A stretch of 64,000 bases of DNA from Oikopleura dioica (GCA_907165135.1 OU015566.1:5518001-5582000), one strand, 5' to 3'; shown: positions 21,253-44,951, counted from the first letter of the stretch. Made by a program: numbers and translations. Notes: generated by a model not told the origin, from the sequence alone.

Positions 21253-21847
21253 ATGGGTTTTTTCCTTCCGTACCTCCAGGTCGCTCGTAGCGCCGGAAAA
21301 TCTACCTTCCCCGCTGCCGTCGCTGGTCAGGCTGCCTATGGCCTTCCTTTGGGTAAAAATATTCTTGAAGAAAAACGCTAAATCCCCTTCTACAGCCAAG
21401 TACCCAGTCCAGTGGGTGGCCCCTAAAGAAGAGCCTTCCATGTACCTCGCCGACTCGCTCTACCCCAAGCCAGGCTACCAGACGTCCAAAATGCTTATTC
21501 CTCGACAATTTGTAAGTTTTGTTTCTTTTTCTTGATCTGAAGAAAATTTCTAGCTCTCTTACCCAACCAACAACGGTACCTTCTACGGCAGCTGGCGATA
21601 TGCTGAGCTGCGAAAGAACCAGTGGCTCTGGTGGACGACTCTTACTGTCATCATGATCACGCTTATTCGGGCTGGCGAAGGCGGATCTTTGAACAAGTCC
21701 TGGCGAGGACACAACGACTCTTACTGGTAAAATCTCCCTTTTCATGAGAAAAACTAATGGCGATTTCTTTTCAGGTACGGAGAAAAACACGAACTTCTGC
21801 ATAAAATCGAAGAGCTTCAGCACAACCTCGGCCGAATGGCTCACTAA
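21253..21847 (+). CDS. Small single-pass membrane protein, 4 exons; weak resemblance to mitochondrial ATP synthase subunit f
   Basis: In-frame splicing through three GT-AG introns; hydrophobic WLWWTTLTVIMITLI; C-ending codon bias; YPVQW..PK and RQF..GTFYGSWRY loosely recall subunit f (identity uncertain). Confidence 0.7.
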
Positions 21848-22193
21848 AACCTATTACAAAGACGAAATCGCAATTTGGAATTAATTCCGAGTTAAAATGC
21901 ATCTGTTTCTTTCTTTTTACGTTTCCTGGAAGTTCACTGTTCAAATTTTTCAAAATCCAGACAATTAAATCTTCAACGAAAGAATGAGATTTTATGAAAA
22001 ACTGATTTTGCGACTAGCGATCTATTTTATATTGAGTTATTTTACGTTAATTTACGTTATTTTCGAGTTAATTTTCACAAGTCATCATTGAATAAATATT
22101 TTATTTTAGAAACAAACGAAAAAGTTCTGCTCAAAGAATAAATAAATAAGAGGGGTAAATGTAACGAATAGACCGAAATATGAAAAGTCGGAA

Positions 22194-25100
22194 TCAAGGC
22201 AAATATAAGGGACCAGCAGTGATTGTAGGAAGGTACTCGTCGATTGATCTTCGTTTTCTTCCGCTGGAACAATCGATGACGCAATTTTCAACGCTAGAAG
22301 GAAGGTAAAGAACTCCTCTTGATTGTTACCTCGAGTCGCAGACGTTTACATCGCAGTGGAGGAAAAGTGTTGAAGCGTCAAGGAACTTGAAGGAGTTCAT
22401 CCTAAATCTCGCAAAGCTCTCTTCGCCATTTTCGAAGATTTCCAAAGTGTCAGCGGCGATTTCGTCATTGTTGCCGCAGAAGTGGTCGATGAATGAATAG
22501 GAGAGTGTGTCTTGAGGATCGTCGCTGAAATTCATATTTTTAACGAAAAAGAGTGCTCGAAATATACGTGGAGGTGGCCCAGCAGCGGTTGAGTTGAAGT
22601 TTGAAGTTGTCGCCAGCTGATTCTAGCGCAGTTTTGACGAAGAAAGGCTGCGGAACGGAAATGGTTTCATTGACCGCGAAATGATCGCTTTAATGTCTTT
22701 CAAAACGGCTCTATCGGTAATAATAAAAATAGCTTTGAAAAACATTCCTGAAAGCGTCGTCTTTGAATAGGTCGATGCTCAGGTCGAAGTTACCGGTCGT
22801 TTCGCCCAAATCGACAGTGAAATGATAGAGCGAGGTCAAAATCGGGCCTAAGTCGACTCTGATCAGCCGCTCGAAAACACAAGCCAAATCGACTTTCAAT
22901 CTTCTTTGACGACTAATCCCTCCATATTTGGCGCCAGCGACGCCTTGAATAGAGCTCTTGATAGTGATGTGAGTCGCATTGTAGACGATCTCGTTCCCAC
23001 AGTCGGCGATTTTTCCCTGCTGTCCGAAGTGATACTCGTCGTTGATAAATGTTCCATTGCAAGCGCTGTCCACGGCTCCACTGGTCGCTGCATTTGGCCC
23101 GCTCAAGGAGGCAGCAGAAGGATTCATGTTTAATTTCTCAAAGACACAGCTGTGGATAGAGATACCGAAATGGTCCGGGCTGCATTTTGCCGAGCTCTTA
23201 TTCGAAGTTATTTTACACAAAGATCAGAAGCTTCCTACTTGTAAGTTAATGTCGCCAGAATCACAAGGAGTGCTTCCCGCAGACGAAGTTGTTGTTGTCG
23301 TTGGTTGTTGAGTGGTTGTTGTTGTAGCTAGAAGATTGATTCTGAATTAGCAGATTCTGTTTTGATCAGAATCTCGACTTTTGTTCTCTCGAAATTTTTT
23401 ACTTACGCGGTAGAATCACATTCTCTTTCGGTGAAAGAAAAAAGGTCATTTTAAAATTTGTTCGATTATATTCCAATAGATATCGCATCTCGATATATTT
23501 GCGATAATTGTTATCTACTTACTTGTAGTCGTTGTTGTCGATGTAGTTGTGCTTGTTGTTGAAGTTGTTGTTGTTGCTAAAAGATTGTTCTTGTGTTAAC
23601 GAATTCTGTGACCAGAATTTCTCGTCTTTTTTTCAAGATTTTTTTTCTCATGAAAAATGCCTTGCATTTTGATATTTGTTTGATTTTTACCATGTGATCA
23701 GACTTACCATTTTCGAAACCGCATGAGAACTCAGAGAAGACTTCAATCGTTTCGTTGATTTTGCCAGTGACGGCGTTGGTATAGACAATGTGAGTGCCGT
23801 TGTGACTCTTCTCCATTCCACAAGCGTCGTAGCCGTAAAGAGTGAATTTATAGTCGGCGCCAGTCTGGTAGTCGAGTTTCCCAACGCATGTGTTCAAACC
23901 AGATGCTTTAATGGGGCTAAATTCATCTGTTTATGAATGATTCAAAGTCAAAAAGTCAAACCCATTGTAGGAAAGATCGACTCCGTTGATCGCCAAATTT
24001 TTGAGTCTCAGTCCCAATCGATGCATCACACACTTGTCGACTTTTACATTAATCTCGTCATAGTCACATGAGAATTTCAAATGGTCAGCAATGTTGATCT
24101 GAATTTTTACCGGAATTCAAACTCCTTGAATGAAAAGTGAAGCTCACCTGATCTGGCTCGGGCATCGATGCCAAATCGCATTCGCAGCCGTGCCCAGGGC
24201 TGCAAGAGCCGAAAGATCCGCACTCCGTAGTTTCTCGTTCACGACACTTTGGCGAAGTAGACAGAAGCCCCCCAGCGTCTTCGCATGGGAGAGTACAGAT
24301 GACAGAGCAGTTGTCGTTCCATATTTCCTGAATGTCGAAGCCTTCTCCTTCAACGACCTCGCATTTCTCGCCTCCCTCATTATCGGTATTGGCCAAGAAC
24401 TCGTGTGAAGAGGAGAAAACTGCTGACACCGTGGCATTCAAATCAAAATCAGCAGGGAACTCGATGCTGAACTGAAACTCCACCGATTTGTCGGTGTTGT
24501 TTACTTGGAAAGCATCAAAAGTAGCGAAGCCAGTTCCAGGTACAAAGGGAACTCTGTCGACTCCAGTTATTTCTCCTGTCTCTCCGTCTTTTAAGGAAAC
24601 AAGGCAAGTAGCTGGATTGAGAGGGAATCCTACAACAGTCATCATTTCTCCATTCTGATCGAGAACGTGCAAAACGAAAGATTTTATATCATTTTGCTCG
24701 ACCTGGAGTCCGGTCGGTTCTTGATCCAGAATAAGCGTAGTTGGCACCTTGTAGACAATAGGCTCGGCTGCAGTGTCTTTGGCCGCTTGTTTTTCATTCG
24801 CTTTTTCTTCCGCAGTCTTTGCTGTTTCCAAGTCGATTTCACCGTCTGAAACAGCCAAAATCTGATCACGAAGGGAATCAAGGTCGATGTCTCCTGATTC
24901 GTCCAATTCAATTGTCCCTTCGTCTAGGCCGAGTTTGTCAATGATGCTTTCACCGACTGGGTTGTCCGCATCAAACCACTCTGGGAGATCTTCACTGAGT
25001 GTTGGTGGATCAGCCATGCCAACAGCCACCTCGCCAACAGAAACGCTTGAATCCTGATCGACGACTGCTGCTGCTACAGCCGCTCCAAGAGGATTTCCTT

Positions 25101-28100
25101 CTTCGAGTGATTTTTTGGCTAATAGGGCGCCAAGATCATTCAGTGCAGCGATCTCAGCCTCCTCTTTTTCCAAATCTTCTTCATCAAGCTCGTTGTCGCC
25201 ATCTTCTGGCCTTTCATCATTGCTTGCAATTTCAAACTGAATAGAGGAGCTTTCTGAATTGCCAGCTCGACGAAGGCGCGGGTTGCCAAAGAAATGCAGA
25301 CCAGATGATTCTCGTCGTTTTCTTCGCTCCTCAGAAGTTTCACGAATGACATTTACAATTTTCACTCGACTCGGTGAAATTCCTAGAAGGGCGGCAATGT
25401 TAATAGCAATGTTACCATTGTCGTAGAACTCGTCGTCTGTCAACTGAGTCGTTACGTCCAACTCGAGAATCAGCGTTGACTTGAGCTGAAGTCCGTAGAT
25501 GTGACCTGTCTCGAGAATCATGTGGATAGCTTGCTCTTGTCGATCGAAAAATTTGATCCCGGCTCGCTGTGAGGCCCGTCAAGAGAAGGAAGATGAATTT
25601 CTCTTCGAGGTCGATCCCACTGGATTTCGTCGCCAACGTAGTGTGCGTTAGTTGGAATCATATAGATGCCGTCTTGCTTGAGGTCCAATCTATTCGGCTT
25701 CAGCGTAATGAACCTCACATGAATCTTGCACTTCTGATCATTGTAGTCCGGCAAATGGAAGTTCATTCGCTTCGGAATCGTTGAAGTGAAGGAATAGTCG
25801 TACTGATGGCCACAGGCTTGGTGAGTCCAAAAAGTGCTCAAGCGAATCATACAAGCATAGCCAATGCAATTAGAGTGATCTGCTGGCCCGTTGACGATGT
25901 CAATGTAGCCCGTGTCGGATCGAATTGCCAAGGGCGCTATTCTTCGGACCATGTGATCCACGTCCATGAATTGGAAATTCATCATTATCATTTTCAGCGA
26001 GTCTGTGCAATGCCACGCTGGAATGGAAGCATCGTAAACGCAGTTTTCATCACGAATGACTCCCTTTTCTGGCGCATACTCTTCAACGGTGAGTTTCTGG
26101 CCGTCGAGAGTTGTCAACATGCCTTTCGGAATTCGGTAATCTCCCAGTCCAGGACGAGTGTCAGTGTACGTCGTTCCATTTCTGGTGACTCCTTCCCATG
26201 CATATTCAGCCTCGGAGTGGAGGAAGCCCGGACTGCCGAGAAGGTCGCCAGTTTCATCGATAACAAGTTGTTTCTTGTGGCCATCGCAATGAAGATCGCC
26301 ACAGGATCCGATGTTGACATAGCGAGTTTTTGGTCTAAAGAACTTTGCGACTTTGCTCAGTGTAGCCACATTACTGTCGAAAGTATTTCCCTGTTTGAAA
26401 TAAGTCGGGTGCGAATAGTCTTCCATTTCTCGGTTCGCACTGAAAATAACATCCTTATCGCCACATCTTCCATTAAATTTAGTAAAAGCATTTGCCAAGA
26501 CACATGTTCGTCCGTAGATTGCTGGAATCTTCACAAACGCTTTGTACATCGGTTTTCCTGGCCATCTATTGTGGCCAACCAAGAAGTCGCTTCCGACGAT
26601 AGCAGCATGGTCACGTGGACTGCTCGTTCCTGGAAAGAACGTTTCGTGCATGTTGCCAATTTGTGAAACTTCATTGTCGACATCGCATTCCCAATGCTCT
26701 GATCGGCCGATAATAATGTTATTTTTATAAGTTATTGATGCTTTTGGGTCGAATTTCCATGCTGTAGCATCCGGTCCTGCGTGGACAGTGTAAAGCGCGT
26801 TAGAATTGTCGACTAATACATTGTCAGAAACCACTTGCCGCTGTGTCTTTGATTGAAAGTAAACCGCAGTGGTTGCATGATGAATGAAGAATCCTGATAC
26901 TTTTTGGCATCGGTATAGTTCCTGCTTCAGAATGTAATAGCCAACAATACATCCGCTGCCAACATTTCCGAAAACGTTTGGATCGCTCTCGTAGACATCG
27001 GCAGTGCATTCTTCGAGATCGCCAATGCAACTCTCACCAACACCATGGTAGCAAGGACCCATAACACCTGCAATATGGTTATTTTTCATCGTCAACCTCT
27101 GAGCGTCTTTGAAATCAATTCCAGCTGGAATCAAGGATGTATCAAGTTCTGAATTTAAGCCGTTTACGTAAGCATAAACAGATCGGTCCCAAATAGAAGC
27201 GATGGCGTTGTTTTCGACAACAGCATCGTTTCCTAAAACGCGGATACCATCTTCAGGTGCGCCAACGATGACGTTGTCTTTCATTTCTAGACCGTGAACG
27301 TCTATTCCGGAACCGATAGCAGTATTAAGGCCATGGAAGAAGGAACAACCGCGAACGTATGATTGCTTTCGATCTCCACTTGCAGTGGGGTCGACATTGT
27401 AAAACAAGAGCTGGAATCGCGAGTCCTCTTCGTTGGTGTAGCCGTACTGCCCCATTTGTTTGAATTGGACGTAGCTGAACTGTCCATAGCCAGATCGGAA
27501 AATGGTGTCCTTCTCTGTTTTTTCAACAGTGCTGGCGACGAGGACTCGTCCTCCGAGCACAGCGTTAGCACCGTCACTGCCATCAATGATGATATTTCTC
27601 GTCAGAAGCATGACGGGAGTACCGAGGTGATATCCATCCGCATCTTCCAGATTTGTCTCGATTCCGAAGTGACGAAACTGCGCAGTCTGATTCAGTGTGT
27701 AAGTTCTTGCTTGTTTTGCAGTTATTGAAAAAAACTCGACTTCTCTTTGATCGAAATTGCTAGATGCGATTGCAATTTCTTCACCAATCTTCCAGTCGGC
27801 GTCTTCACTCAGTGTTATTGTGTTTTCGCCAGGTTGGACTGTTGTTGCAAGATACGTCCAGGTTTTGTCTCTCGGACAGCCGTGCATTTCAAGTGAACCA
27901 TACCCGCCAATTGCTTTGGCTCCGATAGGAATTGAGTTTCCAAGTGCTCCGAACTCTTCTGCTTCAGTATAGTTAGCCATGAGACGGATCGTTACTTTTT
28001 TGTCGCAGGGAACCGGGTTTTCGGCAGTTCCGATGACTAGTTTTCCGATGTTCTGATCGATCAAATCTCGACGTCGGCGAGATTTGCCCCAGGTCGTTTC

Positions 28101-31100
28101 CGAAATTCCAGTATTAACAATAATCGACTCAACTTCAATTTCAATATCATCCTCAATATTTTCAATAATGAGCTCTCCATCAACTAAAAGTTTAGTTGCT
28201 TTGAGAACATTCGGCCTTTCCGGATCTCGGAGATCGTCAGGAATTGATGAAAGCCTGACCTTTCGCTTCTCGCCGATAAATACGTTCGTCTCGTTGTTAC
28301 CGTCCCATCCTGGAACTGTAAATGTCTCTTCGCAGCCGGGCTCACCGATCATGCATTCAATCGTGGCTTCAGTCGTTGTTGTTGTCGGCGGCTGGACTGT
28401 TGTAGTTGGTTCTTCGCATTGAGGATAGAAACACTTGTACATCTTCAGCGACCATTCCGCCGTTCGGCCATGAGTTCCATCGCCATAGGCGTCTACTTCA
28501 TATTTATCCGGGTAAATTCCTTTCGTGCTAGAAATTATTGGATTCTTCAGACCCCTAAGCATGTAAGTCAGTTTGTATCGCTTCGTCGTAAGGAATTCTT
28601 CGTCCGATGTAATGTGATAATCGAGATTGTTGTGACTCTCATTTGTGATCGAAGGAATTTCGTCGAGTTTAACGCCAAGGTTAGTGTAGTCAATGCGCTG
28701 ATGGAACTCGTGCGCAATATGGAGGTAATCATTCTTCTCTAAAAACAACATTTCAGCCGAATAAGTTATGTTGGTGATGTACTCGAATCCTTCGAAAGAA
28801 AGAATATGCTCTTGGCCTTGATTGAGTAGCATCATCCATCCTTTTTCGATCGGTCTGCAGACTCGGTAAGGAGAATAAGCAACGCCATAAGGCGAAACGA
28901 CACGACCTTGAGCGCCTTCTATTGACTTAGGATAAACCCCATGGAACGGAAACCTGTGTGGTTTGAATTTTCCGCCGGCGTATGGACAGACTTGAATAGG
29001 GTATAATATCGACTTTGCGTTGACTCCCTCAGGTCCTGGCCAAACAGAGGTGCAATGATTCGGGTCGTATGCATCCGAATGAGGCACGACGTAGACTTCT
29101 TCGCCGCCATTTTCAGTAAATGATCCATCGATGTCACGAATGGCGTACTCGTGCTCCCACTGAGTTGTCAGTTTTCTTGGTGAATTCGTCCAACGAACAT
29201 TTGTGTACCAGGTTAGAGCAGCACATTCGAATGTATCGGAGCCATAGCAAGGGTTGACAGCTGTACAGTAGCCATTGAAAGTTCCTGGCTTTGATGGACC
29301 GGGCTCATCAAAGTTGAAAAAATGAATGTCATGGACTGTGAAGGCAAACTCCATCCATGGAGTTTCGATTCCCATGGAACCACAGCTATTCACGTGTGGA
29401 TCATGTTTCATGCTTCCGATCACAATCGAACGAACGAATGCTTGAACATTTCCAGGGCAGTCGACGCCTGGACAAACGCCGAATGAAGAGAGGTACGATT
29501 CCTTACCAGCAAGGTTGGAAATGAAGTTATCAGATGCGATAAAATTGTGGAACTGGATGGCACCACCGGTGGTGATTTCAGCTCCTCGCTCGTTATTCCA
29601 AGTGTGGAGTCCGTAAACAGAGTTTCTGTCGACCCCTTCGGGCATTATTGCATTTTCTGGAATCTCACCAATTTTAAGCGCTTTAGGAGCACTTTCTCCA
29701 CAATCGCCGTTCGGTCCAGTCGGAGTAAGGTCGACAAAGACCCAAAGGCCGTATTTCCCAGAAGAGTGGACTGTGTTATTCCAGAATTCCCCGAGAGGGC
29801 GGTTCTTGCAGCAAATTGTATTTGTTGCAGATGGGCCAGTCGGATGTTTTGGCGAGTTATACCAGTAGCCGAAGTGGGTAGAGCCAGCTACAGCGTTGTG
29901 GCGGATGATGTTGTTCGGATTCGGCATCCAGAAGGACGAAGGAATAGCATCAATATTCAAAAGAGAAGAGGATTTTTTAGTCATCACTGCTAAATTGTAC
30001 TGCACAATATTGTCTTCTTCGATGCCATCTTCCAGGAAAAACGTTAAACCCATGACGTTAAAAGCAACATTGTGTTCAACAAGAAGATTGTGAACTCCGT
30101 GCATTGTCACAGCTCGATTGAAGCTTTCGTGAACGCTATTGCCTCGAGCATAAGTATTCGTATCAACCAAGTCACCTGTCATATGGAAATGAATTGGATA
30201 TCGGCCTAACCGGAAAGCTTGTCCGACGAAATTGAACTCGACGAATTCGATTCGAGCGGAATCGACCATATGCATAAATAAATGCCCTCCGAGCTGATCA
30301 GAGCCGACTTCGTGTCCATATCTGTTCTGAAAGCAAGTCTGGGTGCTATTAATTTTGTCGAAAGCGGTTCCGATTCCAAGCTCACATTCGTCCAGCTCCT
30401 CGACCCAGTCTAAGTTTCGATTTCCCTGGAAAAGCACATTCTTCGACAAAAGACCAACTTCAGCTCTTTGGCAGATTGTTCCCGCCCAGTCAAAACCATC
30501 TGAGCACTCGGCCATGTGGCGGTATTTTAGAGTATCATTCAAAGTCAATGTGTAGCCGTCAGCACTCACTGCTGAAATATAAGCAGTTTCGGAATGATGA
30601 AGATGCATCCGGTCACCAGTTGTTGCGATGATAACTTGATCTCCTGCAACCCAATCGTTTGCGACAGGATGAGTTAACTTAATTGTGTCGTCACCGACCT
30701 CAGCAGTTTCATCCATATGAGTCCATGAAGTGTGAACGCGGCAACCATGGAGGTCGATCGTTCCACGGCGAACTGCGAACACCTTAGCGCCGTAGATCGG
30801 GAGCTCGACAGACCGTTGATGGCCATACATCGTAATTGTTGCGTCAAAGGGAATTGAACGGTCACCAGTTGGATCGCAGAAAGGTTCGTCTTCGGTTCCG
30901 ATTTCAAAGTGTCCACCATTTGTCACGACTGCGTATTCTGTCTTGAGCTCGATGCCGTGAACTCGGTCCCAAATAACAGTTCCTCCGTCAACAATCAGAA
31001 CAGCAAGAATAGGCGTCGATTCATCAAGCAGAATCACTTTTCCTTCAGGAATGACGACAATGTCGCCTGCCATCGGTTTGCAACTGCCATCTGTGCAACC

Positions 31101-34100
31101 CCAAGTAAACGTGCTCGACCATCTGTCGACGTACCAGAATTTTAGATCGTCGGAGCTGAAAACACCGTTGCCAAAATTAACGAATTCAATCTTTGGCTGA
31201 ACTGGTATGTTGAGGCCACTGTAAGCTTCCGTCTCACAAATAAGCTCCGAGAAAGTTCTCGAAAGAGTTATGCAGACGATACCATGAATTGAGACAAGGG
31301 CGTCTTCACCTGCATCTAAGTTTGAGCCAGTAAATGTGATTCTAGTGCCACCAGCTGAACCGCCTTTAGTGGGGCTGAAACCAGAAATAAGGGGAGTCTT
31401 GGTTATATCGACGTAAATGCTCGCTTCTGCAGAAATGATAGAACCCGTCGATTTATCAGTTACTGAGAGTCGAACAACAACGATTCCAGATTGCGTAACA
31501 TGATCAAGATCTTCGAAAATGCAGGTCATCTGGGTTCCTTCAGCGTTGACTGCTTGAATTAAGCAGTCGATTCCGTCGACAAGAACAGCGGAGTTTTCAG
31601 CACTAAACCCGGCGCCGAAAAGAGTTATCGGTTGTCCTCCAGACTGACCAATAGACGCAGGCGAAACTGTATCGAGAGAAAGAGAAAAATCAACATCCAC
31701 CTTTCCAGAGAAATATCCCGTGGCTGAATCTCTTACCCGAAGACTGTAAGAACCAGCTGAAACCGAAGGCATGATGACTGTCAAAGAATCGCCGGAACAA
31801 GAACCAGAAAGCTCGTGGAAAATCTCGACTGGATTGACACCAGATTCTTTGTGGTGTCCTGGGTTGCCGCATTGAAGGTCGAAATTTATCCCCGAAAGTG
31901 TTGCATCATCATACAAAAGGCCAGTTAGAATTTGTCCATAGAATTTATCATGAGAAAAGTTTTCTCGAAGGTAGTAATTGCTCTGACTCAAGCGATAACG
32001 TCCGTCAAGCTGCAGGTGTTTTTGCCAGCGAGCGCAATCAGCAAGTTGGCGATTTACTACAATTACTGGTAGGTTATCAGCATTAGGGTCTCCATCTTCG
32101 ATTTCAAAACACTCATAATCGCTGTCTTGGTTTTTGTTGTTGGCGTGCTTGAAAATCGCGACACCGTCGGCGAATTCAGCGAAACCAAGTTGAGTGTTTT
32201 TTCGGTTCTGTTCAAAGCTATCATGATTAGATTGAAGGACAAATGAATCTAACGTTCGGCCGATTATAGCGCCACTCTCTGTGACAACTTGACAGATTTG
32301 CTGATCCTTCATCGCGCAATTCGGCACAGCACACTGGATCCATGCGGGCTCACTTTGGCCTTGTTCGACTTCAGTTGAAATATAACAGAAAGGTCCTTGA
32401 CTTCGGAAGTCGGGATTACGGCACGAGTTTCCAGCAAGATCCAAATTGGCTTCTGAGGTTGATCCTGGAATCGAAGGCACTTCTGCCCAGTTGACGCAAT
32501 CATGACCTTCAGAATGAACGAGATCGCCCCTATAGTACTGTCCTCTGTCTGAAAAGCAATCTTGTTCATCGTAAGACTCGCACACGATTTGATGAGTATT
32601 TGAGCAAGGAACAAATTTCAGCTGCGCGGAACCTACATGGTAAACAAGACAGGAATCTACAGATGGGAAAGTGACCTGGTCTGTCCATGCAACCGCAGTG
32701 CCGTCTAAGTCGTGAGTGAGCGAGTTGTCAGTCGCCGAGTATTTTATGTTCAAGAAAATATTCCCGCTCTCGGTAGAAAGAACATTTGTTATTTCTTCCA
32801 CGGACTCGAATTTCGCAAGATTCCAAAGAAAGTTTTCTCCCTCAGCAAAACAGTTGCTTTCCGCGACTGCGCTCAGTTCCTGTGGATCTTTTATTTCAAA
32901 CTTAGAACATGAGAAACCATCTCCGCGATAGATTCCCTGGCAAACGCAACTATATTGGATTCCATCGAGATTTGGCACGCATTCAGCTGCATAATGACAG
33001 TTGTGAACTCCTTCCGCGCAAGGACTCATGTTCAATACCAGATCAACTCGAAGTGAGCTAGAACATGTTCCAGTTGGCAGCTCAAGAGAAATTGAGTCGC
33101 CAGCGGAGAGATCACTCACGTCAGAGAAAGTCGTCGGGCTCTCGTTGCCAACTTCGACGAAAGTAAAGTCAAATTTGAACGAATCGTGATCAATAAACTC
33201 ATGTTCAATTTCTATCGAGGCAGCGCCTGTTATTCTACCAGAAGGCATTGAAAAGACCAATTTATCGCCAATAGAAATAATTGGACATCGAGAGCATATG
33301 ATTCCTCCACTTTGTGTAACAGTTATTGAAATATCTTCGGACCAACCATATCCGGAGACTGTGACATGCTGCCCGCCGTTAACCGATCCGGAAGTTGGAG
33401 TTATTGATTCAGCAACAAAGAGAGCATTGACTCTGACAAGTGGTGCCACATAGATTATTCCATCATCAGCAGTTCCGCTTATTGAGTACGAGCCGGCAGC
33501 AAGAATAGGAGCATCGCATGTTTGAGAATTGGTGTTTCCTGAGCACCCACTTACCATTTGCCCATCGATTGTTATTTGAGCACCATCCAAATTGACCCCG
33601 TTGAATGTTATTTGGGAAGTGTCGTGACTGATTCCAGAGGCGGGTGTGAACGATGTGATTTGAGGAGTAGCGGACAAACTGGCATAAACTGGGATCTCAT
33701 CGATGTCGAAGGAATTGTCAACATTGTAGAAATCATTGTCATGACGAAAAAAGATCGCCAAGTTCACTTGTCTATCAGCGATCTCTCCCCACATTTCAGG
33801 AGCCTGACAAATTATTTCAGTGTAGGTCAGGGACAATATATCACAACGATAGGCAGGGTCCTTTCCAAGATGAACTTCTGTTTCAACAGAAATAACATCG
33901 TCAGTTTCGAGAAGATTTTTGTCTTGAGCGATAAATCCAGCACCAGTCATCGTTAATTGCCAGCCTCCTTTAACACCGACTGAAGTTGCACTGACAGCTG
34001 TTGTAACAGGCTTAATTTTGAAACTTTTTGAACCATCATAGCTATTGTAGTAAGCTCGTCCACGCCCAGCTAGGACAAAATCGAATTGGTACTGCACTAA

Positions 34101-37100
34101 CGGGTCCATCACATTGTTGTGTTCGATTGCGTATGTGCCACTGATACCTTCTGACGCTTTGTAGAAGTTGTTTTTCGGATAAATTGCATTGCCCAATCGT
34201 TGAGAAGCAGTAAAGTGCGCCTGTGTTGTACAATCTCCGGATGTCTCGAAATTCGTTATCGTCAAATTTGCCTCCATAAATGGAGTCGACGGCCCATTCG
34301 CCACCCACTGGTCTACCACAGGTGTAAACGCCCAGGAATAAATGATCGAGTGCTTTTCCAATGCACCGTCAAATGATGAGGCACTGTTTGTCGTCGTCAC
34401 GCTACAAGCGCCGAGCTCAGATGCTCCGTCATCAGAACCATCAAGAACAGGAGGAGTGCCAATATGCGCCGCGATATGTGGCCATTTCTCATTCACTTCG
34501 CCCCATTGTCGATCAGAGAAGCTGTCTGTGAAAATGACTTCTAACCATTCAGGTCGCTCGACAGCTTCTTCGACAATTACTACTCCATTTAGCCAGGTGC
34601 TCCAGGCGTTGTCAATGTATCCGGTCGAATAATGATAAGTCCCGGGCTCTGTAAAGAGGCGGAGAAAATCTCCCGTCGATTCTATTATCAGTGGACTCCA
34701 GATTTTATCGTCTGAGGAAGCTTCATCACAATTCGGCACATCGCATTCTTGAAATTGCATCCTTGGTGCGTACCCGTTAACCGTGAATGACCATTTGAAG
34801 CGAACAGCTTCGCCAGCTTTGATTCTTACTGTTTCGAAGTTGCTTCCTGTGCTCATCGAAATTGGCTCGTTTATTGCGTACCCTGTTTCGCAAACAATTT
34901 TATCCGCGAATACTTCCTTGACGTTGCACTGATTTCGATCGCCACCTGAGAGCCCGCCGACAGCAAAGATCTCGACAGTTGTTTCTTCGTTGAGCTTACT
35001 GTTTGGAGTAATTGAGTCTGTAGCGAAGCCAAAGCCCGAAATTGTGATGATTCGGCCACCAGCAAGGGATGAATAGCGCGGATAGACGCCAGTTACTTCG
35101 ACTGCGTACTCGAAGTTGACTTTGTTCGAGAAACCGTTTTCTGCAGATGTTATTTGCAATTCATAAGGCCCTTGATCGAGCATAACTGTAACTGCTACAA
35201 TTTCCGTGTCAGACCAGCTTGTGATTGTCCAGTCACCAGAATTTGCTGTTCGAAAACCCAAACAACCGCGATGTGCGTATTTAGAATCAGTAAGGCAATG
35301 GTTTTCTGAGAAAAGTCCCTGAACGTCTACTCTTGATCCGTTCACTTCTGAACCGAATCCAGTTCCAGTAATAACCACGATGTCTCCACCAAGAACAGAC
35401 ACTTTTGTTCGCGACAATCCAGTGACTGTAGGCGTGGAATCGCTCGCAGTCTGGCGGCGTTTTCTGTTCGAGTCTTCAACAGGCAGCGTAATGCATTTCA
35501 TTTCAATGTAAGAAACTTCTCCAGGAATCGCGATACATTCTTGAAGAGTATCGAAAACTTCAATGACAAGTCCCTCATAAAATCCAATTCCAGTCACAGA
35601 GACGATTGAACCACCAAATATCGAGCCGGACTGAGGCGAGTACGAAGAAATCGTGAGTAAAGATTTAACTTTGACGTCAGACTTCGCGCTTCCAGAAGAT
35701 GGGTCTTTGAATAAAACTAGGTTTTCTCTACCTGGAACAGGACCAACAGTCACGGTCAATCTCGTGGCAACAAAGGGGATGACTTCTTCATGCGAGATTA
35801 TTTCGCATCTGCTTCCACCTATTTCAATATAGCTTTCAGCAGATACTCCAGTTGTTGCCGGGAAAATCACATCTACAGTGATTGTATCTCCTTCAGCGAT
35901 CACGTCCTCCTCGCCGACTGAAGTTGCGTAGACAACAGGAGTGTGATCTTCTGAGAAAGTAAATGAGCATCCATAAAGCATGTTGTCAGTCCATGTGTCA
36001 GGGTGCATTTCTTGCCGGTAGTGAGCACTACACTTAGATCTTTGGCGATTCGCGATGACAACTACTTCTGGAACTCTTTGAGGAATGGCCATCATTGATC
36101 CTTGAATTGTTGATTGATAAGGACCGCCCTGCCAAAAGTCATCATTGATCACAGAGAACGCTGCTGCGGCATCTGGATTGCGTTCCACGAATTCTACTGA
36201 TAGCGAATGCTCGGCCTTCAGCTGACCAAGATTGCCTCTATCAAGACCTTTGAAGTCAAAGTAGTAGCCATTCATACAGTCGCCAGTTTTGGTGACTTCT
36301 AAGTTTATTCTCTGAAGATGAGGCCACTGGCTTCGCAGTTCAGATTGGACTATTGAAGCAGATTGAGAATGGTCAAAAGAATAGGAGGTCTCCCCGTCGT
36401 CAATGCCGAAAGATACTCTTGTTGAAACATGAGAACAAACTGCCTCACTGATGTTGTGACTTCCAGTCAATGTGTAGCCACGACGAGAGTGCGCCAAGAA
36501 GTAACCAAGCCTCGTTTGAGTGTCATCCTCGTATCGCCCATTCTGGAAATCGCCGAGCCACTGTAAGCCGATGGAAGCATGATCGTATCCATGAATCTCG
36601 TTAAAACTAAATTCAAACAATTCTTCGCTTCCTTTCTCCATGAACAAGTCTTTCGTTTGCTGCTCATGACCTCGTGCGGTATAGTCAAAAAGCTGCTCCA
36701 AGATTCGTAATTATAAAGGGTTTCGTAAGACCCGTCCTTGTTGAATCTCAGAAGTCTCGCGTGAGCATCGTGCGAGAAAATCATTCTGTACCAACCGGTG
36801 CGAGGGACGAGGAAGAAGAATTGGCTTCGAGCAGAATAATGATCACGGTTGAATTGGCCACTCCATTTTGTTCTCTCGGAGCCTGAAAAATATGACGAGT
36901 CGATTATTTCGAAGTTAGCCGGCTCGTATTCACGATTGAAAGCCTCGTGTCCATAGGTGTAAGCATCTCGGTCATCGACATATCTTACTGAAGATCCTCT
37001 GCTTCCGGCAAATTCTCCAACGCGCTCACAACTTATAATTTCACACTCAACGATTGTATTGGAAGCAGTTGAGTTGCAGCTAGGAGTGGCGAAGAGACCA

Positions 37101-39423
37101 TCTTCATTTCTGCAAAATGTGCCTTGTTGACAGTCGTCCCCGTTTTTGTCCACAGCGAGAGTTCCTTGATAGCCAACTCCTTTGCCCCAAATGCAACGAG
37201 TTGTTTTGACTGCGTTTGTTGTGTCCATGTCAAGTGCCATCTCCCCAACCAGATGGTCTCGATCTTCGTATTTGCCACAGTTGTCAGTTGAACCCATTTT
37301 CGGAAAGCACGATCCGTCAAGGGGATCATAAATGTAGTGCGTGCAAGTGGCCAGTTCTTCACAGTGCAGTCTACAAGCTGATTGAGTGGGAGTGAAGTGG
37401 CTATCAAAGATGTCATTTCCCGGACAGTCGTTCGCGTCGCCAGATAATGGGCTCCAATTGAACTTTCGCCTGTGAGTCTCAACTTTTTTCGTCACGCAAG
37501 TAATCTCTGTTGAAGTGTGAGTGAGAATTTCGCAGGATTTTCCACCAAGTTCAACGGTTGTTTCTCCAAGCGTGCTCGAAAATCCGGTTCCGGTGATGGT
37601 TATTACAGTGCCGCCTTCTGCCGATCCGACATTTGGTGAAACAGAACGAATCATCGGATAAACTTCGAAGTTGAAAGGATCGAGGTTGTCATTACCAAGC
37701 ACGTGAATAAAATCCTCCGAGGTAACGGAGGCTCCTTCGTTTTGTGTCGTGAAAGTAAAGTTGTATTGACCAGGCTCTTCTACTCTAGCGAGACATCTCA
37801 AAATTCCATTAATATTGTGGGTCATTTCCCGGAAGAGTTCGATTTCCAGCGACTCATCCTTCTTGATCGACAACTCACATTCGCCCATGTTGAGTCCATC
37901 TTCAGAGATGAATCGAGGCTGAAAAAATATCCTGTTCGGATCTTCCTCATTTCCGTCGTCGACTGCATTGAAATTCACTGTGCGGAGTCGTCCTTGGAAG
38001 TCGATCGCGTTTTCCGCGCAAAGGTAGCGGATTTTGACATCTGGGCACATTTCGATTTCGCCCAGTGTTTGCGTTTGAGCGCTGTCAGAGCAGTGGAATC
38101 CTTCTTTCAAGTTGAAAGTTTGCGCATGTGGGAGGCCATCGGAGTTGAAATTAATCGACTGTACAAATGTTTCGTTGTTGTTTTTGTCGAAAATTTCCCA
38201 ATCAACTGGGGAACGACAAGCTCCCGCTAAGTAGAGTTTTCTGTGTCTGTGATGCGAGGAGAAGCGTTCGTCCTCATCTCCGTCGTTGTCCGTGTCAAGA
38301 TCTATCCACATCGACCAAAATGTTCGTTCCTCGAGGTATTGTTCTTGAGGATGCGCAGCTGGCGACGAAAAGTAAGGAGTCGCCCAGAAAATCTCGGGTC
38401 CCCAGAAGACTGTGAATGTAAAATCCCACCCTTCTATGATTTCTCCCCCGTCGATGACAAGTTTTACCTTCCAAGTTCCTTCTCGATGAACAGCGGGCGT
38501 CCGGCAAACGAGCGAAGGGTGATCTTGGTTACCCACTTGTCTTGACAAAAGCGTCAACTGTCGATCGAATTCGCAGAATTTGGGAGATTCTCCGGCCATT
38601 TCGAACCAAAGAACGAAATCGTCGCCATCTGGCGAGCTTTCATCGGCGATGGCGCCAGGGATATTGAGTTTGCTTGATACTAGATTCCATCCTACGACGG
38701 TGATCAGCTGTCCTCCGAGGATGGAACCTTTGTTTGGAATCACTCTCGTTACACTTGGGGCTCCAGCGCGCCGTTTTCTTGCTCCGTCCTCGTCGTTTTG
38801 TGAACGAATGTCGGCCAATAGCTCTTCTCTTGTTAATTCTTCCGCGCTGATACCACAGATTGTGTAGCAAGTGGAGACGCCGTTGTTCTCTCGTGGAGCC
38901 ATCGTCCGTTTCTTGTCCATTTCGAGCAATGCTTCCTCGACTTTACAAGGCTCGTAAGCCGGAACACCAAGAATGGCGTACGAAATTCGCAGTTCGTAAT
39001 CCACACCTTCTTTGATTCCAGTAGCTGTGCATTGCAGGAAGTAAGGATAGTCCAATCCTTCTCGCTGCGGATACAAAGGATCATTCTCCTCAATCGTCAG
39101 ATCTTCACATTTTGGCGGATCCTCAAAGTCTTCCTCGGCCGGATTGAAAAATATCTCGACACTTTCATGCAAAACAAATTCTCTGTCTTCATTGTATTCT
39201 CCAAGCAATTCGAGATTTGAGCCCTAGAAAATTATTTCTACGAGAATGAGGGCTTGAATTTGTATTTAACATTTTTGAAATATTTTCTTATACGTACCCA
39301 AAATTGAACAGTGTCTCCATCTCTGACGACTGGATCTGGTGGTTCGAGTTTTGGTGCTTGAAGAGTGCCATGCACTATCGAAAGAAAAGAAAGCCGTAAA
39401 ATTTTCTCTCCCAGGGAAGGCAT
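22194..39423 (-). CDS. PKHD1L1: Giant PKHD1L1/fibrocystin-L-like protein (~5,500 aa) with extra modules and C-terminal ZP-N + ZP module
   Basis: Many IPT/TIG repeats, PA14-like and cupredoxin-like segments, two G8 domains (DRWSSTFTWG..GDIVVIPEG), parallel beta-helix (GRYPIHFH, HESFNRAVTMHG), C-terminal GSNFFDR..DDEFY..NIAALLGI; two -1 frameshifts at T5 runs (36687-91, 25547-51); ZP exons 22194-24098. Confidence 0.9.
22688..22747 (-). other. 60-nt non-canonical GA-AG intron with 15-bp terminal inverted repeats
   Basis: Only this splice keeps the ZP frame (DAFS|DHFAVNET); 22692-22706 and 22732-22746 are 13/15 complementary. Confidence 0.65.
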
Positions 39424-40249
39424 GGCTTTTTAATGCTAATGTCTCTTTCTTTCGTTGAAAATGGAAAGTTTAGATTTTAGAGGGCGCCAGATCAAACTCC
39501 GCTTTCTTATCTGTTTGATATTATCTCGTGTTCCGGGTCGCCGGGTCTTCAATTCGAGACAATTCCATGTTATCAAAAATGGACATCATTTCTTCGAAAA
39601 AAGATCATCTTCTGACTTTCAAAAATCGATGTTTTTAGTTTAATAAAGGAAAATAATCACGGAAAATCGCTCCTGCTCGTAAAATTTAAATGAACCCGCA
39701 ATAAATCGTGTAATCGTTTTCGGTGCAAGACTAAGTAATAAAATGATAAAACAAAGTAATCTTTTCGCAACTCGTCAACTACATAATAAGTTATTATCAC
39801 AAATAACACGGGTCTAAGGCAGCATCATGATTACGATGAATGATAAATTTGGCGTTATTTCTCAGTAATCGAGATTCTTGGATTAAGTTTTTATTCTTTA
39901 TAACGCTTTAAAACGCGCTGCTTTGACAAAAGGAGCTGCTTTCGAGAATTCCTTGCGTTTTGAATTTAAAATAAACAATCATACAAGACAAAAATATCAG
40001 GACAATAAAAGCTTGAAAGAAAAATAAAAGAAGATTTTAAGAATGTTTATTAGAAAATAAGACTAGAAACAAGAATGAAAGTTTTGTAAAAAATGCTTTT
40101 GATTGAGATCTTGATCAGTCGCATTTTAGACGCAAAAGCCAGCAGGAACTTCAAAAGAACAGGGATAGAGCTGTAAACACTGTTTCCGATGACTTGTTGG
40201 GAACTGTAATCTACACTGTAAATCAGCTTCAGCAGGGCATCGAGCAGGG

Positions 40250-40744
40250 CATTCGTGAAAAATATCCGTTTCGAGATGCAGAAATCCCCTCGAACTTTTA
40301 AAGAGCTAATCATTCCTAATGGAACTTTTAATTAGGAATTTCAATTATCGATTGGATTGTACATTTTCTGAGTTCTTCTCTTTTGACTCTATTCCGTTTG
40401 GAGATCTCCAAGAAAAATGAAAGGAACTTCATTTAACTTTCTTTTACTGATTAAAAACGTTGAAGATTCAAATATTTCATTGTCACTTCGAGTTGAAGTC
40501 TTCGACAGACACCAAGGATCCACCATCCATCGGTGGGTGAAGGCGCCAAGCCGAGGCAGGGAGATGCAACGTGACCACCGCCAACTCCCTCCCGCAGAGG
40601 CAGCACATCTGCGAAAATAATTGTCGAATAATTGAAAATTCGACTAGGTTTTTTTATCTTCAGTGAAAGTTTTATTAGGAATGATTAGCTCTTGAAAAGT
40701 TCGAAGGGATTTCTGCATCTCGAAACGGATATTTTTCACGAATG
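40250..40744. mobile_element. Inverted-repeat element (~80-bp arms) in the last intron of copy A
   Basis: 40250-40329 complementary to 40666-40744; right end GTTCCCTTTA is Kolobok-like. Confidence 0.7.
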
Positions 40745-41626
40745 TTCCCTTTACCACTAGGTAACGATTGATCTCTGTGCATGTGCGCCCAGCTGTTATC
40801 TTTTTCAATCTTGGCCTATATATGCCCTACTCACCTTCCGGTACCTCCTTGTTGATTCGTCAATCGATCTCCTTTAAAATCGAGCCGTTCAATGGCGTGT
40901 GGACTTCGGTAGCCTGAGATGATGAAAATTGAATTTTCGATCATTATTGCAGATGCAGAATAGTCAGCCTTAATTGAAATCAGATTTCTTGAATTATTAT
41001 ATTTTTGAAATTTACGTTTTGAAGATCGCCGATCTGTCTCCAAACATCGTTTTCAAGAAGCCAAATTGCTGATTGATATTTATTTCCATCATATCCCCCG
41101 GCGAGCAAAAGACTTCCACTTGGAAGGCCCATCAATACATGGAAATACATTCGACTAGCAAGATTTGAATAATGAAATTTTTTTTCAAATACCTTTTAGG
41201 AAAATCTGGTAAAGTGGACCAGCCCCGAGAACTCAAAGTCTCCACTTTGTTGCTGTAATAGCTTCCAACAGAAGTGGGCTTTCCATTGTAGTCGCCGAGT
41301 TTACCGCCCAAGTGTTTATAACTCGATGTGAAAGTGTCAATTGAAAATTCTCCATCGAAAATTTCACATTTAAAGGCATAAAAGCTATCAAAGCAAATTA
41401 GTGCTTTTTCTCCATTTTCAATCGAAAGGGGAGTCACATAATAGCTCCGCCCTGCGCCACCCAGTTTTTACCGAACCGGGCGAGGCAGGGCGGCGCAAGG
41501 CGGCCCTATTCAGTACCCCCGTTCGAAAGTGCTGCAGAGCCACTCGAAAATGGATTTATCAATCTTGTCGATTGTTCTCTCCATTCGCATCCTTCTAATT
41601 TGGCAATCTGAATAAAACTATTTTAA

Positions 41627-42171
41627 CCGCGTGGGACGAATCCCCGCGTATGAGCGCGGGACGAACCGTACATTCGAATGTCATTTAAGCAAAAACTCGA
41701 ATAACTCATGAACCGCTCGTCCGATATTTCTCAGATCTTCATAGATAACTAATCTTCATGTCCTCTTTCATATCCTGATGTCAGAATTCATATTTTGGTT
41801 TCGTCAGAAATAATTATTTTTTAGTAAGTATGAGAGTGAAAAATTTTTACCATCATCTTCCGTGCTCTTTTCACTCGAAAGAAGTTGCACTTGGTGAAAT
41901 TCCATCAAAAATATAGACAAAAGTTGCCCAGATAGCTCAAACAAACAAATTGGTTCCTTTTTACAGTAAAAATCTCAGCGGGCGCTCGAGTAGGCCAGAC
42001 TTAATCCCGTGTCAGGTGCAGCCCTGATAAAACTTCCAAATTTGCACAAGTTACTAAGAAGGCATGAGCTAACCCACATTTAAAATTTCAAAGTTATCGA
42101 ATTTATAGTCTTGGAATACCGGGCCCCTAAAGTCTTAAATGACATTGGAATGTACGATTCGTCCCACGCGG
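41627..42171. mobile_element. piggyBac-like MITE, intronic
   Basis: TTAA target duplication (41623-26, 42172-75); 16-bp TIR CCGCGTGGGACGAATC; asymmetric subterminal repeat. Confidence 0.85.
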
Positions 42172-42660
42172 TTAAGATCGTTTTTAAGTTAGTTTTCTTA
42201 CTTTATTTCTATCCCTTCCATCAAAAATATAGAGGTTATTTTTTACAAGAGCATGAGGAGCCCATCGAAGATAGTCCTTTCTTGGTGCTGCTATTTCTGC
42301 ATTTATTTTTCTTTCTCCATTGAAGGAAATCACAAATGCTTTTGCCAATTTTTCGCCCATAATAAGAATTGCTTTCCCTGAAGAAATAACAAAATTTTTC
42401 ATTTCTGCGCGATCATCGTATTTAAAAATCCGTAGTTTCTCGTTTTTGATATTTTCAAGGCCAATCATCTTAATTTTCGAGTTAGTTTTCTTTTTCTTCA
42501 AATTCTTTTTTTGGGTTCAGTAATCTTTTAAAAGCGAAAGTAAAAGTTTGTATTTTACTGTTCCTCAGAAACTTCAAGTAAGTACGAGTCAGGTGAACTC
42601 GACGAGCTAAAATGAAGTGACAACTTCGACAGTTTCGTGATGTTTGATTGCAAATGTAGT

Positions 42661-44951
42661 TGGTGTGGGGCGCTGTGCAGCCTCGTATATAAGCGGGCTC
42701 CTAGCCCGCAACCAGCACTCCTCTCCACCCTCAAGGCCAGCTCACACCTACCGCTCAGGTCTCCCAGTTATACTGGTGAACTGTCGTGGGATGTTTGAAC
42801 CTGCCCTTAATGGAGATATAGGAGCCAAAAATCCGTAAAAGCTTATTTTTTTCCGTTTTTGTCGAGATATTCTGCTACCAAAAGAGAAAAACGGTGATTC
42901 TATCTTGATGCTTTGCTGCTTTTAATAACTTCAACGATTCGACGCTGCTTTACGATTTGGAACTGCTTTGCTCTACGTTTAAAACATGTTGGTATTTTAT
43001 TTTGACAAACTATTCGATTTGGACTCTTATGGAGAATTTATTTGGATACCTTTTTCAATGATTCGTATAATTAATTGCTAGCGGATTTATTTATCCTTTT
43101 GGATCAAAACTTTCTTTGGAATTACTTTCTATTGGAACTCTCAAATTTTATAACCCGTCATTCGTTTATAAAATTTACTCTGGAATCTCGAAAAGAATTG
43201 TGAGATCTTTATGACGATCAGAATCACAGATATCAGTTCTCAAAACTGATAGCCGACTCAACCAATGACGTCAATGCTTCACTTATCAGTTCCCAAGGAC
43301 GACAAGACCTTCACGTCACTTGGTTCTCATCAGCGATGCAACTCATCAATTGACGATATTAGGTTCTCATAAATTCTTATCGACGATTATGGGTTCTCCC
43401 TCATCAACAGTTTTTGAAATGCAAGCTTTACTAAAACCCTGTCAAATTACGAAAGTTGTTTGTTCTAAATGCTGATTCTTTATCGGTTGACCTATGGCAA
43501 TGGACAGTGAAGTCTGGATTACTTATGAGATTACTGAGGCTAGCGAAAAAATGGACGAAGAAGCGATGAATTATGAGACAATTGAGAATAGACGAGTTTG
43601 TGGACATGCTGGTGTCATTTGAAAAAGCGAAAGATAAGATCAACATAGTTATTTCTTTGGTTTGACGATGATCAAATCCTGAGGAGTGATATTCCTCTTT
43701 ATTCGTGGATCGAATCGAAAAAAATCGCCTTCCAGACGATATACTTTTGGTCACTTTGTTGACGACTATATTTGTTGATGGTCTTTGTGATCTTATGGCA
43801 AGGAGAAGTCGTGGAAAACTTCTTAGGCCTGGATAAACCCGAAAAGTGCCAACATAGTGGACTTCGGTAGGTCGACAGCATGGAGAGGACGTCCGAATTA
43901 AACGATATCAAAGGTGAAGAAAAGTTTCTACACTGGATGAAGACTTGACTTCACGCTGCCGAGAGAACGATTTGCAAGTTCTTGATAAAAGCAGAAGATA
44001 TCGGGCTGAAGAAAAATGAACTATAGAAGAAACTCGTGGTGACTGCGAACAATTTGGCCGGAACTTTGCCCGTCACCTAATATAATTGTTTTGTCACGTT
44101 GGAAAACATTGGGTTATGATGATTTGCAACTTTGTTTAATCGAGAGGCAATAAAAACAGTATTTCAAAACGAATCAACTTGGACAACGACGTGCTTTCTT
44201 GCAAACTGAAGAAAAAAGAGCCTGTAATTTTTTTTTACGATTCGGTTCTCATAAACAAAAAAAAAATTACAAAGTATTCAAAAAATTACAAAAATATCAA
44301 CTACTAACAATGATCTTTGCTTTGTATAGATTTTCCTTATTTCTTCCCATCTTGCTTGTTTCTTCTAATAATCTTTTAAATATTTATTTAAATGATCAGA
44401 TTTCCCTGGACTATTGAGTCCTGAACGTTCGTTCGGAAGGGACCTTCTCATAAAGCTCATCCGTCAGGCGGAGCTAGGCAATTAAGCCGGTTTAGTTTTT
44501 ACTTATGTTAGTTTCAAATTTATTAAAATACCTTTTCTCATTTATTCTTGCTCTTTGTGCGCGTGTGAGCGCCGGCGCGCTCATTTACTGTTATCACTCT
44601 TACGCGCGTTACTGTTTCTCATCAATAGATTCTCTCTCTTTTCTGCACTCACCGCGTATTCTTTCTTATGTATTTCCTTTCTAAATTTCTCCTTATTTCC
44701 TTAAATTTTGAGTTCTTTTATACTTCTCTTATAAATATTTAGAAGATTAATTTTAAGATCCATTATTTTATGTTTACTGAAAATTATTATTCTGTACTTA
44801 AAATTTCATTCAATAAACATAAAAACCTTAGGGGAGGAGTGGTGTGGGGCGCTGTGCAGCCTCGTATATAAGCGGGCTCCTAGCCCGCAACCAGCACTCC
44901 TCTCCACCCTCAAGGCCAGCTCACACCTACCGCTCAGGTCTCCCAGTTATA
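42661..44951 (+). mobile_element. Non-autonomous LTR retroelement (2,291 bp) with identical 112-bp LTRs
   Basis: LTRs 42661-42772 and 44840-44951 (TG...TA); 5-bp TSD GTAGT; PBS-like TGGTGAACTGTCGTGGGAT at 42774; PPT AGGGGAGGAG 44830-44839; TATATAA in LTR; no gag/pol ORF. Confidence 0.92.

Follow-up and report, generated by a model that had tools for sequence, protein, structure and literature searches.

A larvacean gene in which a fibrocystin-L-like ectodomain is probably joined to a zona pellucida module

Fibrocystin proteins are, to our knowledge, membrane receptors of cilia and stereocilia for which no ligands are known, and zona pellucida (ZP) modules are the standard means by which animals build extracellular filaments. 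Representatives of both families are known from the larvacean house, whose proteome includes oik14, a fibrocystin-like protein (IPT, G8 and PbH1 domains) that is probably without a membrane region, and oik20, a ZP-domain protein without a predicted signal peptide (PMC3390340). Both show expression in giant Fol cells, the makers of the food-concentrating filter (Hosp et al., PMC3390340), and a 2026 preprint reports eight fibrocystin homologues, with expression of half of them (4/8) in the Fol and Eisen fields of the oikoplastic epithelium (bioRxiv 10.64898/2026.03.31.715263). Here we analyse a 64,000-nucleotide stretch of Oikopleura dioica DNA (GCA_907165135.1, OU015566.1:5518001-5582000; hereafter the window, with positions counted from its first letter), in which a fibrocystin-L ectodomain and a ZP module are probably parts of one gene, on the minus strand from 39423 to 22194. 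This degree of confidence applies to our best explanation as a whole, one fused gene together with the mechanism proposed below, and not to its single parts.

The predicted gene runs in 10 exons from an ATG at 39423 to a stop at 22194, and its full model comprises about 5,518 residues, with 144 cysteines and 28 N-glycosylation sequons (an unknown residue was placed at each of two frame breaks, described below). Exon 1 (39298-39423, 42 codons), with a putative start at 39423-39421, encodes a weakly signal-peptide-like N-terminus (MPSLGEKILRLSFLSIVHG), and the ORF (open reading frame) of a relative likewise opens with a signal-like peptide. From the GT donor at 39297, a 74-nt GT-AG intron leads to a giant exon 2 of 15,076 nt (24148-39223), which encodes the fibrocystin-L-like ectodomain in a single frame if one base is allowed at each of two runs of five T (T5). 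Taken as assembled, this exon holds ORFs of 913 codons (39208-36470) and 3,727 codons (36701-25521), followed by a frame of 473 codons (25566-24148).

Pfam scans of the upstream ORFs returned IPT/TIG, two G8, CEMIP beta-helix, kringle, mucin WxxW and PAN domains. The features that define the fibrocystin-L/PKHD1L1 family are found among them: multiple IPT/TIG domains (TIG, E 1.1e-39 in 6 stretches and 1.2e-19 in 2 stretches), two G8 domains (E 1.9e-39, 2 stretches; the best-scoring stretch, 30714-31082, is the first G8) and a right-handed beta-helix (CEMIP_beta-hel, E 7.9e-55), which comes next at 30293-29745. The last 678 residues of the 3,727-codon ORF (3050-3727) share 33% identity with a Lytechinus fibrocystin-L-like protein over 97% of their length, and the Lytechinus, Amphiura, Penaeus and Tubulanus fibrocystin-L-like proteins cover 94-100% of these residues with E-values of 7.5e-88 to 3.9e-57. 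Further downstream lies a stalk domain of about 100 residues (IVYKVPTT...FSIEF, 24457-24759; no Pfam match), which recurs in the tail cassette of a CAP-ZP protein of Styela clava and, judged by eye with its fold inferred, may be beta-sandwich-like. Directly before the first ZP-N domain follows a cysteine-rich, EGF-like stretch with 10 Cys (24172-24363), whose Cys columns are conserved in relatives. The original prediction had placed an EGF-like repeat at this point; a Pfam scan of 24172-24363 made no EGF domain call. The single-pass helix and short cytoplasmic tail of the family are absent, in line with the predicted lack of a transmembrane anchor: the whole model contains no membrane-helix-like window of 19 residues, and its last 19 residues (-0.2 Kyte-Doolittle) form a hydrophilic tail.

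To model the junction between the two parts, we enumerated all stop-free in-frame joins at each exon boundary. Nine exons (25566-24148, 24098-23962, 23916-23708, 23576-23523, 23327-23239, 23196-22748, 22687-22568, 22524-22330 and 22293-22197, then the stop at 22196-22194), separated by introns of 49 (GT-AG), 45 (GT-AG), 131, 195, 42, 60 (GA-AG), 43 and 36 nt, give a stop-free frame of 923 codons that ends in CVIDCSSGRKRRSIDEYLPTITAGPLYLP. The 473-codon frame closes with CECDLASMPEPDQ (...MPEPDQ at 24148) at a GT donor, and the next exon opens with INIADHLKFSCDYDE (INIADHLKFSC). The 49-nt phase-0 GT-AG intron between them (24099-24147) has the sole GT donor among the stop-free joins found, and a public model from the OKI2018_I69 genome (P0007) uses the same junction. 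When spliced at this intron and at the following 45-nt one (23961-23917), the product aligns with seven relatives without gaps. The claims that a fibrocystin-L part is fused in frame to ZP-N, a Thr-rich linker and a full ZP module, and that the 49-nt intron joins them, are thus supported by the stop-free frame, the Pfam domains and the relatives described below. It had further been claimed that no stop, ATG or signal peptide lies between the parts, and this holds for the stop and the signal peptide but not for the ATG, as internal Met codons occur in the ZP part. The fused region had been given as 22194-25550; its lower end is the stop, and a frameshift, in the T5 run at 25551-25547, falls at its upper bound.

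The ZP part begins with a domain that we call ZP-N1 (23708-24098), encoded by the two exons on either side of the 45-nt intron. The first of these gives a half ZP-N match in Pfam (E 1.2e-4), and the domain shares 42-47% identity with the one ZP-N that relatives have, which itself lies above the Pfam threshold in three of the four relatives scanned. A GG-AG intron (23962-23927) considered earlier within ZP-N1 was replaced by the GT-AG intron, which restores Y-N-G-P-I-K and colinearity with the relatives. Two Thr-rich mini-exons, both placed by frame joins, come next: one of 54 nt, phase 1 to 1 (23523-23576), and one of 89 nt (23239-23327). Together they encode a stalk of 38 residues, 32 of which are Ser or Thr. 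Each mini-exon, together with about 75 nt of its upstream intron, is about 75% identical to the other (23500-23650 versus 23215-23400), so the mini-exon with its acceptor region is a tandem duplicate. The exon at 22748-23196 encodes a second ZP-N (ZP-N2) and continues through the interdomain linker into the beginning of ZP-C. Pfam ZP-N (PF23344) matches it at 23196-22750 over profile positions 1-100 of 101, with E 2.6e-8 and a score of 34.5 bits, above the cut-off of 24.7. ZP-N1 and ZP-N2 share 22% identity (E 3e-5 in a two-sequence comparison) and both have an extra Cys 12 residues after the first, a similarity that suggests an internal duplication.

At the boundary of ZP-N2 and ZP-C, the best reading of the splice is a non-canonical GA-AG intron of 60 nt (22688-22747). 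We preferred it because the canonical GT-AG alternative (intron 22743-22648) would remove 12 residues present in all relatives. In O. dioica, introns of the GA-AG type are common (PMC7072748), non-canonical introns make up 11-12% of the total (PMC8008620), and the median intron is 49 bp long (PMC7072748, PMC8008620). The remaining three exons (22687-22568, 22524-22330 and 22293-22197) encode most of ZP-C (22197-22687). Pfam PF00100 matches at 22686-22570 (E 1e-3) and 22523-22332 (E 3.2e-12), with profile positions 27-59 and 62-125 flanking the 43-nt intron, and the six Cys of the domain follow the uromodulin/GP2 pattern and align with those of uromodulin and the relatives. Among solved structures, GP2 and uromodulin are closest to the ZP module: the matches of one relative, P0006, have E-values of 1e-19 to 1e-16, those to uromodulin spanning ZP-N through ZP-C, and in the window a ZP-C exon matches uromodulin/GP2 with E 1.3e-5 and the ZP-N2 exon uromodulin with E 0.008. 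After the last ZP-C Cys stands RKRR (22248-22259), a consensus furin-type site with RKR or RRRRR at the equivalent place in relatives. From there, 17 residues remain to the C-terminus, including a putative short propeptide, EYLPTITAGPLYLP, which with the stop occupies 22194-22238, has neither a membrane helix nor a GPI-like tail, and holds a candidate external hydrophobic patch. The two mini-exons, the complete ZP-N/ZP-C and the RKRR-plus-tail ending agree with the original prediction in the exon model, and ZP-N/ZP-C also in Pfam.

Support for the fusion comes from related genes. A search with the 473-residue exon found proteins in the European Nucleotide Archive (ENA) that are 38-52% identical over 84-99% of the query and have ZP-N, ZP-C or both. 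In at least seven relatives (P0001, P0003, P0005, P0006, P0008, P0010 and P0011) the fibrocystin/ZP junction lies inside one uninterrupted ORF. Four of these relatives were traced to assembled ENA contigs, one of them from the Tara Oceans metagenome project, and because these contain tiny introns or neighbouring genes, they are genomic rather than cDNA. In the traced contigs, a single unbroken ORF runs from the C-terminal region of fibrocystin through the Cys-rich stretch to ZP-N; the same ORF adds ZP-C in P0005 and P0006, and the first half of ZP-C in P0001. One relative's ORF, of 4,091 residues, comprises seven TIG domains, a kringle, two G8 domains, a CEMIP beta-helix and ZP-N. We take the metagenome relatives to be other larvaceans on account of their tiny introns and similarity. 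In addition, the public model CAG5102553.1 (O. dioica OKI2018_I69, chr1 g355, 5,726 aa) has TIG, two G8, a CEMIP beta-helix and ZP-C.

A HMMER search with P0005 returned about 18 clusters at 50% identity (our own count) whose best match spans the fibrocystin/ZP junction. Among the 20 longest matches, three are of fibrocystin type with a CEMIP beta-helix, two of these also with G8, and the rest are tectorin-, uromodulin- or DMBT1-like. Outside the tunicate group, neither the homologue searches nor the HMMER search found a fusion of G8 with ZP, and ZP is absent from the annotated fibrocystin-L-like homologues that we retrieved from sea urchin, brittle star, shrimp, nemertean and fluke. Of the tails inspected, those of the Amphiura (brittle star) protein and of P0021, a protein of unassigned origin, end in a clear membrane helix; P0015, like P0021, has a helix. 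A search of Joint Genome Institute (JGI) metagenome contigs for exact matches to the 26-mer across the spliced junction gave none, and no long proteins with a tail like that of CAG5102553.1 were found by a search that relies on shared words and is weak evidence of absence. G8+ZP fusions that were already widespread would have counted against the original prediction. Inside the tunicate group they are common, with several paralogues, a public predicted protein and the clusters just mentioned; beyond it none was found. The fibrocystin-L-ZP fusion is, then, real and common within the tunicate group, and the gene in the window seems to belong to a fibrocystin-L-ZP family that has expanded in larvaceans. 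The literature searched for fibrocystin together with zona pellucida yielded no description of a fusion. The architecture appears to be a new combination of two known protein families, one that a public prediction also shows but that we found nowhere described.

The relatives have one ZP-N followed directly by linker and ZP-C, whereas the order here is ZP-N1 (the orthologous one), Thr stalk, a divergent ZP-N2, linker and ZP-C. The extra ZP-N and the Thr stalk appear to be specific to this copy among those compared.

One further element bears on what the protein would do. About 840 residues from the protein end, upstream of the ZP part, is a multibasic site, RRKRR (25312-25326). Its column is basic in 11 of 11 aligned homologues (echinoderm, shrimp, nemertean, fluke and larvacean-like relatives), and by this alignment the gene has the juxtamembrane multibasic site of the fibrocystin-L family. 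Human fibrocystin has a proprotein-convertase (C1) site at residue 3616 (PMC13424714, PMC6992733), to which RRKRR probably corresponds.

We propose that the protein would enter the secretory pathway, where a convertase would cut RKRR and remove a blocking C-terminal patch. The ZP modules would then assemble head to tail into filaments, as those of uromodulin do; we infer this order, from RKRR cleavage through patch release to filaments, because it is so established for uromodulin. Giant fibrocystin arms would project from the filament core on a glycosylated Thr stalk. A second cut at RRKRR may separate arm from stalk, and the pieces could stay linked, like those of human fibrocystin. The protein would probably act in the house, or in the apical matrix of the epithelium that makes the house, and the suggestion that the product is a candidate fibre of the house matrix fits the published work, namely the house proteins oik14 and oik20 (PMC3390340) and the expression of paralogues in the oikoplastic epithelium.

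Several points weigh against a fused gene that acts in this way. The predicted N-terminal signal peptide is weak. The hydrophobic patches are guesses, VDLGPILTS in the linker as the internal one and LPTITAGPLYLP in the tail as the external one having been picked from position only. The in situ probe primers of oik14 and oik20, compared as DNA and as translated peptides, have no match in the window (at least 6 mismatches), and the gene would therefore be either another paralogue than oik14/oik20 or from a divergent lineage. The only close match that we could reach in the Okinawa genome is a fragment flanked by repeats, consisting of the stalk end and ZP-N1. In transcript data covering 21900-27800 (three oligo-dT runs and one single-cell run, all with the same species label), none of the four runs had reads on the gene outside low-complexity Thr codons; the only matches were partial, 90-95% identical, came from other genes and fell on the ACA-repeat mini-exons. 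We regard this null result as uninformative, as a divergent lineage may have been the source of the runs, or the samples may not have expressed the gene; since RNA gave nothing, the support for splicing comes from splice-site logic and from comparison. Finally, the assembly as given carries two frame breaks, and cleavage at the conserved upstream convertase site could detach the fibrocystin part from the ZP part.

The Okinawa fragment (O. dioica OKI2018_I69, OU015568.1, L005 17885-19095) comprises the stalk end, the Cys-rich stretch and ZP-N1, with exon-by-exon identities of 57-78%. A copy of a repeated element with kinase-like ORFs lies on either side of it, and the annotation links it, across about 8 kb, with a PhoPQ-related gene in one model (g13047) that looks chimeric. 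This locus, that of P0007, was considered as the orthologue and rejected, holding only the stalk end and ZP-N1, which makes it unusable for a test of exon conservation.

The effect of the upstream convertase site defines the alternative that survives best. The gene could be fused as proposed and yet make other products: a cut at RRKRR would free a soluble ectodomain of about 4,680 residues, and only the remaining stalk and ZP part of about 820 residues would polymerise, or the ZP would be a non-polymerising binding domain. Conservation of the multibasic site in every aligned homologue speaks for such a cut, as does the finding that about half of human fibrocystin is cleaved at its C1 site (PMC13424714). 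However, the human fragments stay disulfide-linked (PMC13424714, PMC6992733), and the ZP module here is of the polymerising uromodulin/GP2 type with a furin site at the usual place. Whether the arm remains attached after the RRKRR cut decides between a giant-arm filament and a free soluble ectodomain beside a small filament; we consider the latter kind of outcome unlikely.

It is a less probable alternative still that the gene is broken: the two 1-nt deletions would be real, translation would end at 36467 or 25518, and this locus would never yield the ZP tail. Both breaks are present in the assembly as given, the four RNA runs have no reads on the gene, and the Okinawa genome holds a related fragmentary copy. 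The first break is one missing base in the T5 run at 36687-36691, in a PA14-like stretch (...YESWSSF, then DYTARGHEQ...), where the sequence looks coding in both frames and leaves no space for an intron; blastx of this region against relatives gave no matches, and the break was judged from the frames alone. At the second T5 run (25547-25551), the upstream frame meets a stop at 25520-25518 unless one T is added, giving the T6 needed here. Eleven homologues align on both sides of this run, and the close ones read NFFDRQEQ or NFFDRQSQ straight through. We also considered whether a 71-nt GT-AG intron (25637-25567) could account for the change of frame at 25520, and ruled it out: the relatives are continuous there, so a T is missing. 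Against a broken gene, each break is a single missing base in a T5 run, a typical error of long-read assembly; apart from them, about 5,500 codons are stop-free in the correct frames; and the 923 codons past 25551-25547 are open, the first 473 with 52% identity to P0001. Because the relatives are continuous at 25551-25547 and there is no further stop in about 5,500 codons, both deficits are probably homopolymer errors of the assembly. Two T5 breaks in a gene of about 16.5 kb that is intact elsewhere suggest that homopolymers are systematically under-called in this assembly.

Least probable of all is an arrangement in two units or isoforms, with the fibrocystin part ending near 24148 or, through intron retention, after ZP-N1, and the Thr/ZP exons expressed separately, for example by operon trans-splicing: the RNA runs gave no reads for the junctions, read-through of the 24147 or 23707 donor meets a stop within about 20-45 codons so that shorter isoforms are possible, and the introns after ZP-N1 (131 and 195 nt) are unusually long for this genome, but no start codon with a signal peptide exists anywhere in the ZP part, the parts are only 49 nt apart, the junction lies inside one exon in relatives, and the ZP-C here most resembles, and is colinear with, the one found in relatives after their single ZP-N.

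One fused gene with the mechanism proposed above thus remains our preferred explanation, and it has several implications. The fusion predicts fibres bearing arms of about 4,700 residues and, for the food-concentrating filter, provides a concrete candidate mesh or fibre protein, and the larvacean house becomes a tractable system in which to ask what a fibrocystin ectodomain binds. From the absence of an anchor in oik14, and of a signal peptide in the ZP protein oik20, we infer that the two may be halves of one fused gene, and they merit re-examination in this light. For annotation, homopolymer errors and short non-canonical introns split such giant genes in current assemblies. A more speculative reading, which we hold to be quite improbable, takes the fusion as a Rosetta stone, in which fibrocystin ectodomains and ZP filaments of the uromodulin/tectorin type are ancient working partners. 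If that were true, the unfused vertebrate pairs PKHD1 and uromodulin (at kidney cilia) and PKHD1L1 and tectorins (at stereocilia) would bind via the stalk region that is fused here, and larvaceans would have turned a sensor-and-matrix pair into the structural fibre of the house filter.

An AATAAA (22100-22105) lies about 90 nt past the stop codon, and just downstream of it is a minus-strand ORF of 180 codons (21305-21844) without a Pfam match. Between the gene start and a long terminal repeat (LTR) element at 42656-44956, the interval 40050-42500 contains short ORFs only. We considered whether this LTR element interrupts the gene; by the gene model it lies upstream of the start at 39423, outside the gene.

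Compared with PKHD1L1 and PKHD1 of other animals, the predicted protein is alike in its many IPT/TIG domains, its two G8 domains with beta-helix units and its juxtamembrane multibasic site, but has an EGF-like stretch, ZP-N, Thr stalk and ZP module in place of the membrane helix and cytoplasmic tail. Kringle, WxxW and PAN domains are also added here; the mucin CysD (WxxW) and kringle domains are inserted in the fibrocystin-L scaffold (38018-38317 and 32316-32558), likewise in CAG5102553.1. With uromodulin and GP2 it has in common the six ZP-C Cys, a basic site after ZP-C and, immediately ahead of ZP-N, an EGF-like unit rich in Cys. Unlike those proteins, it has neither a GPI anchor nor a membrane helix beyond the cleavage site, its N-terminal arm is about 4,700 residues long rather than about 300, and it has an extra ZP-N and a mucin-like stalk. 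An extra N-terminal ZP-N ahead of a full ZP module is also found in the egg-coat proteins ZP1, ZP2 and ZP4. Fish egg-coat ZP proteins that have no membrane anchor come from precursors ending shortly after the cleavage site. In all these egg-coat proteins the N-terminal regions are unrelated, and the proteins are far smaller.

The nearest comparisons are within the tunicates. The organism group and the two domain families are the same as for oik14 and oik20, and oik14 too is noted to be without a membrane region; those, however, are described as two separate proteins, whose probe primers have no match here. CAG5102553.1 has the same overall architecture, including ZP-C, and is colinear over about 5,000 residues. 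Because it is only 33% identical, we regard it as a paralogue; it has one ZP-N, no Thr stalk and an extra Cys-rich basic tail after ZP-C. Over about 490 residues, the window's gene shares with XP_077966103.1 of Styela clava (811 aa) an unbroken cassette, made up of the stalk domain, the Cys-rich stretch, ZP-N, ZP-C and an ARKR site, at 27% identity (E 7e-37), but the N-terminal partner there is a CAP domain, not fibrocystin. This suggests that the stalk/Cys-rich/ZP cassette moves as a unit in tunicates, joined to a CAP domain in one case and to a fibrocystin-L ectodomain in the other.

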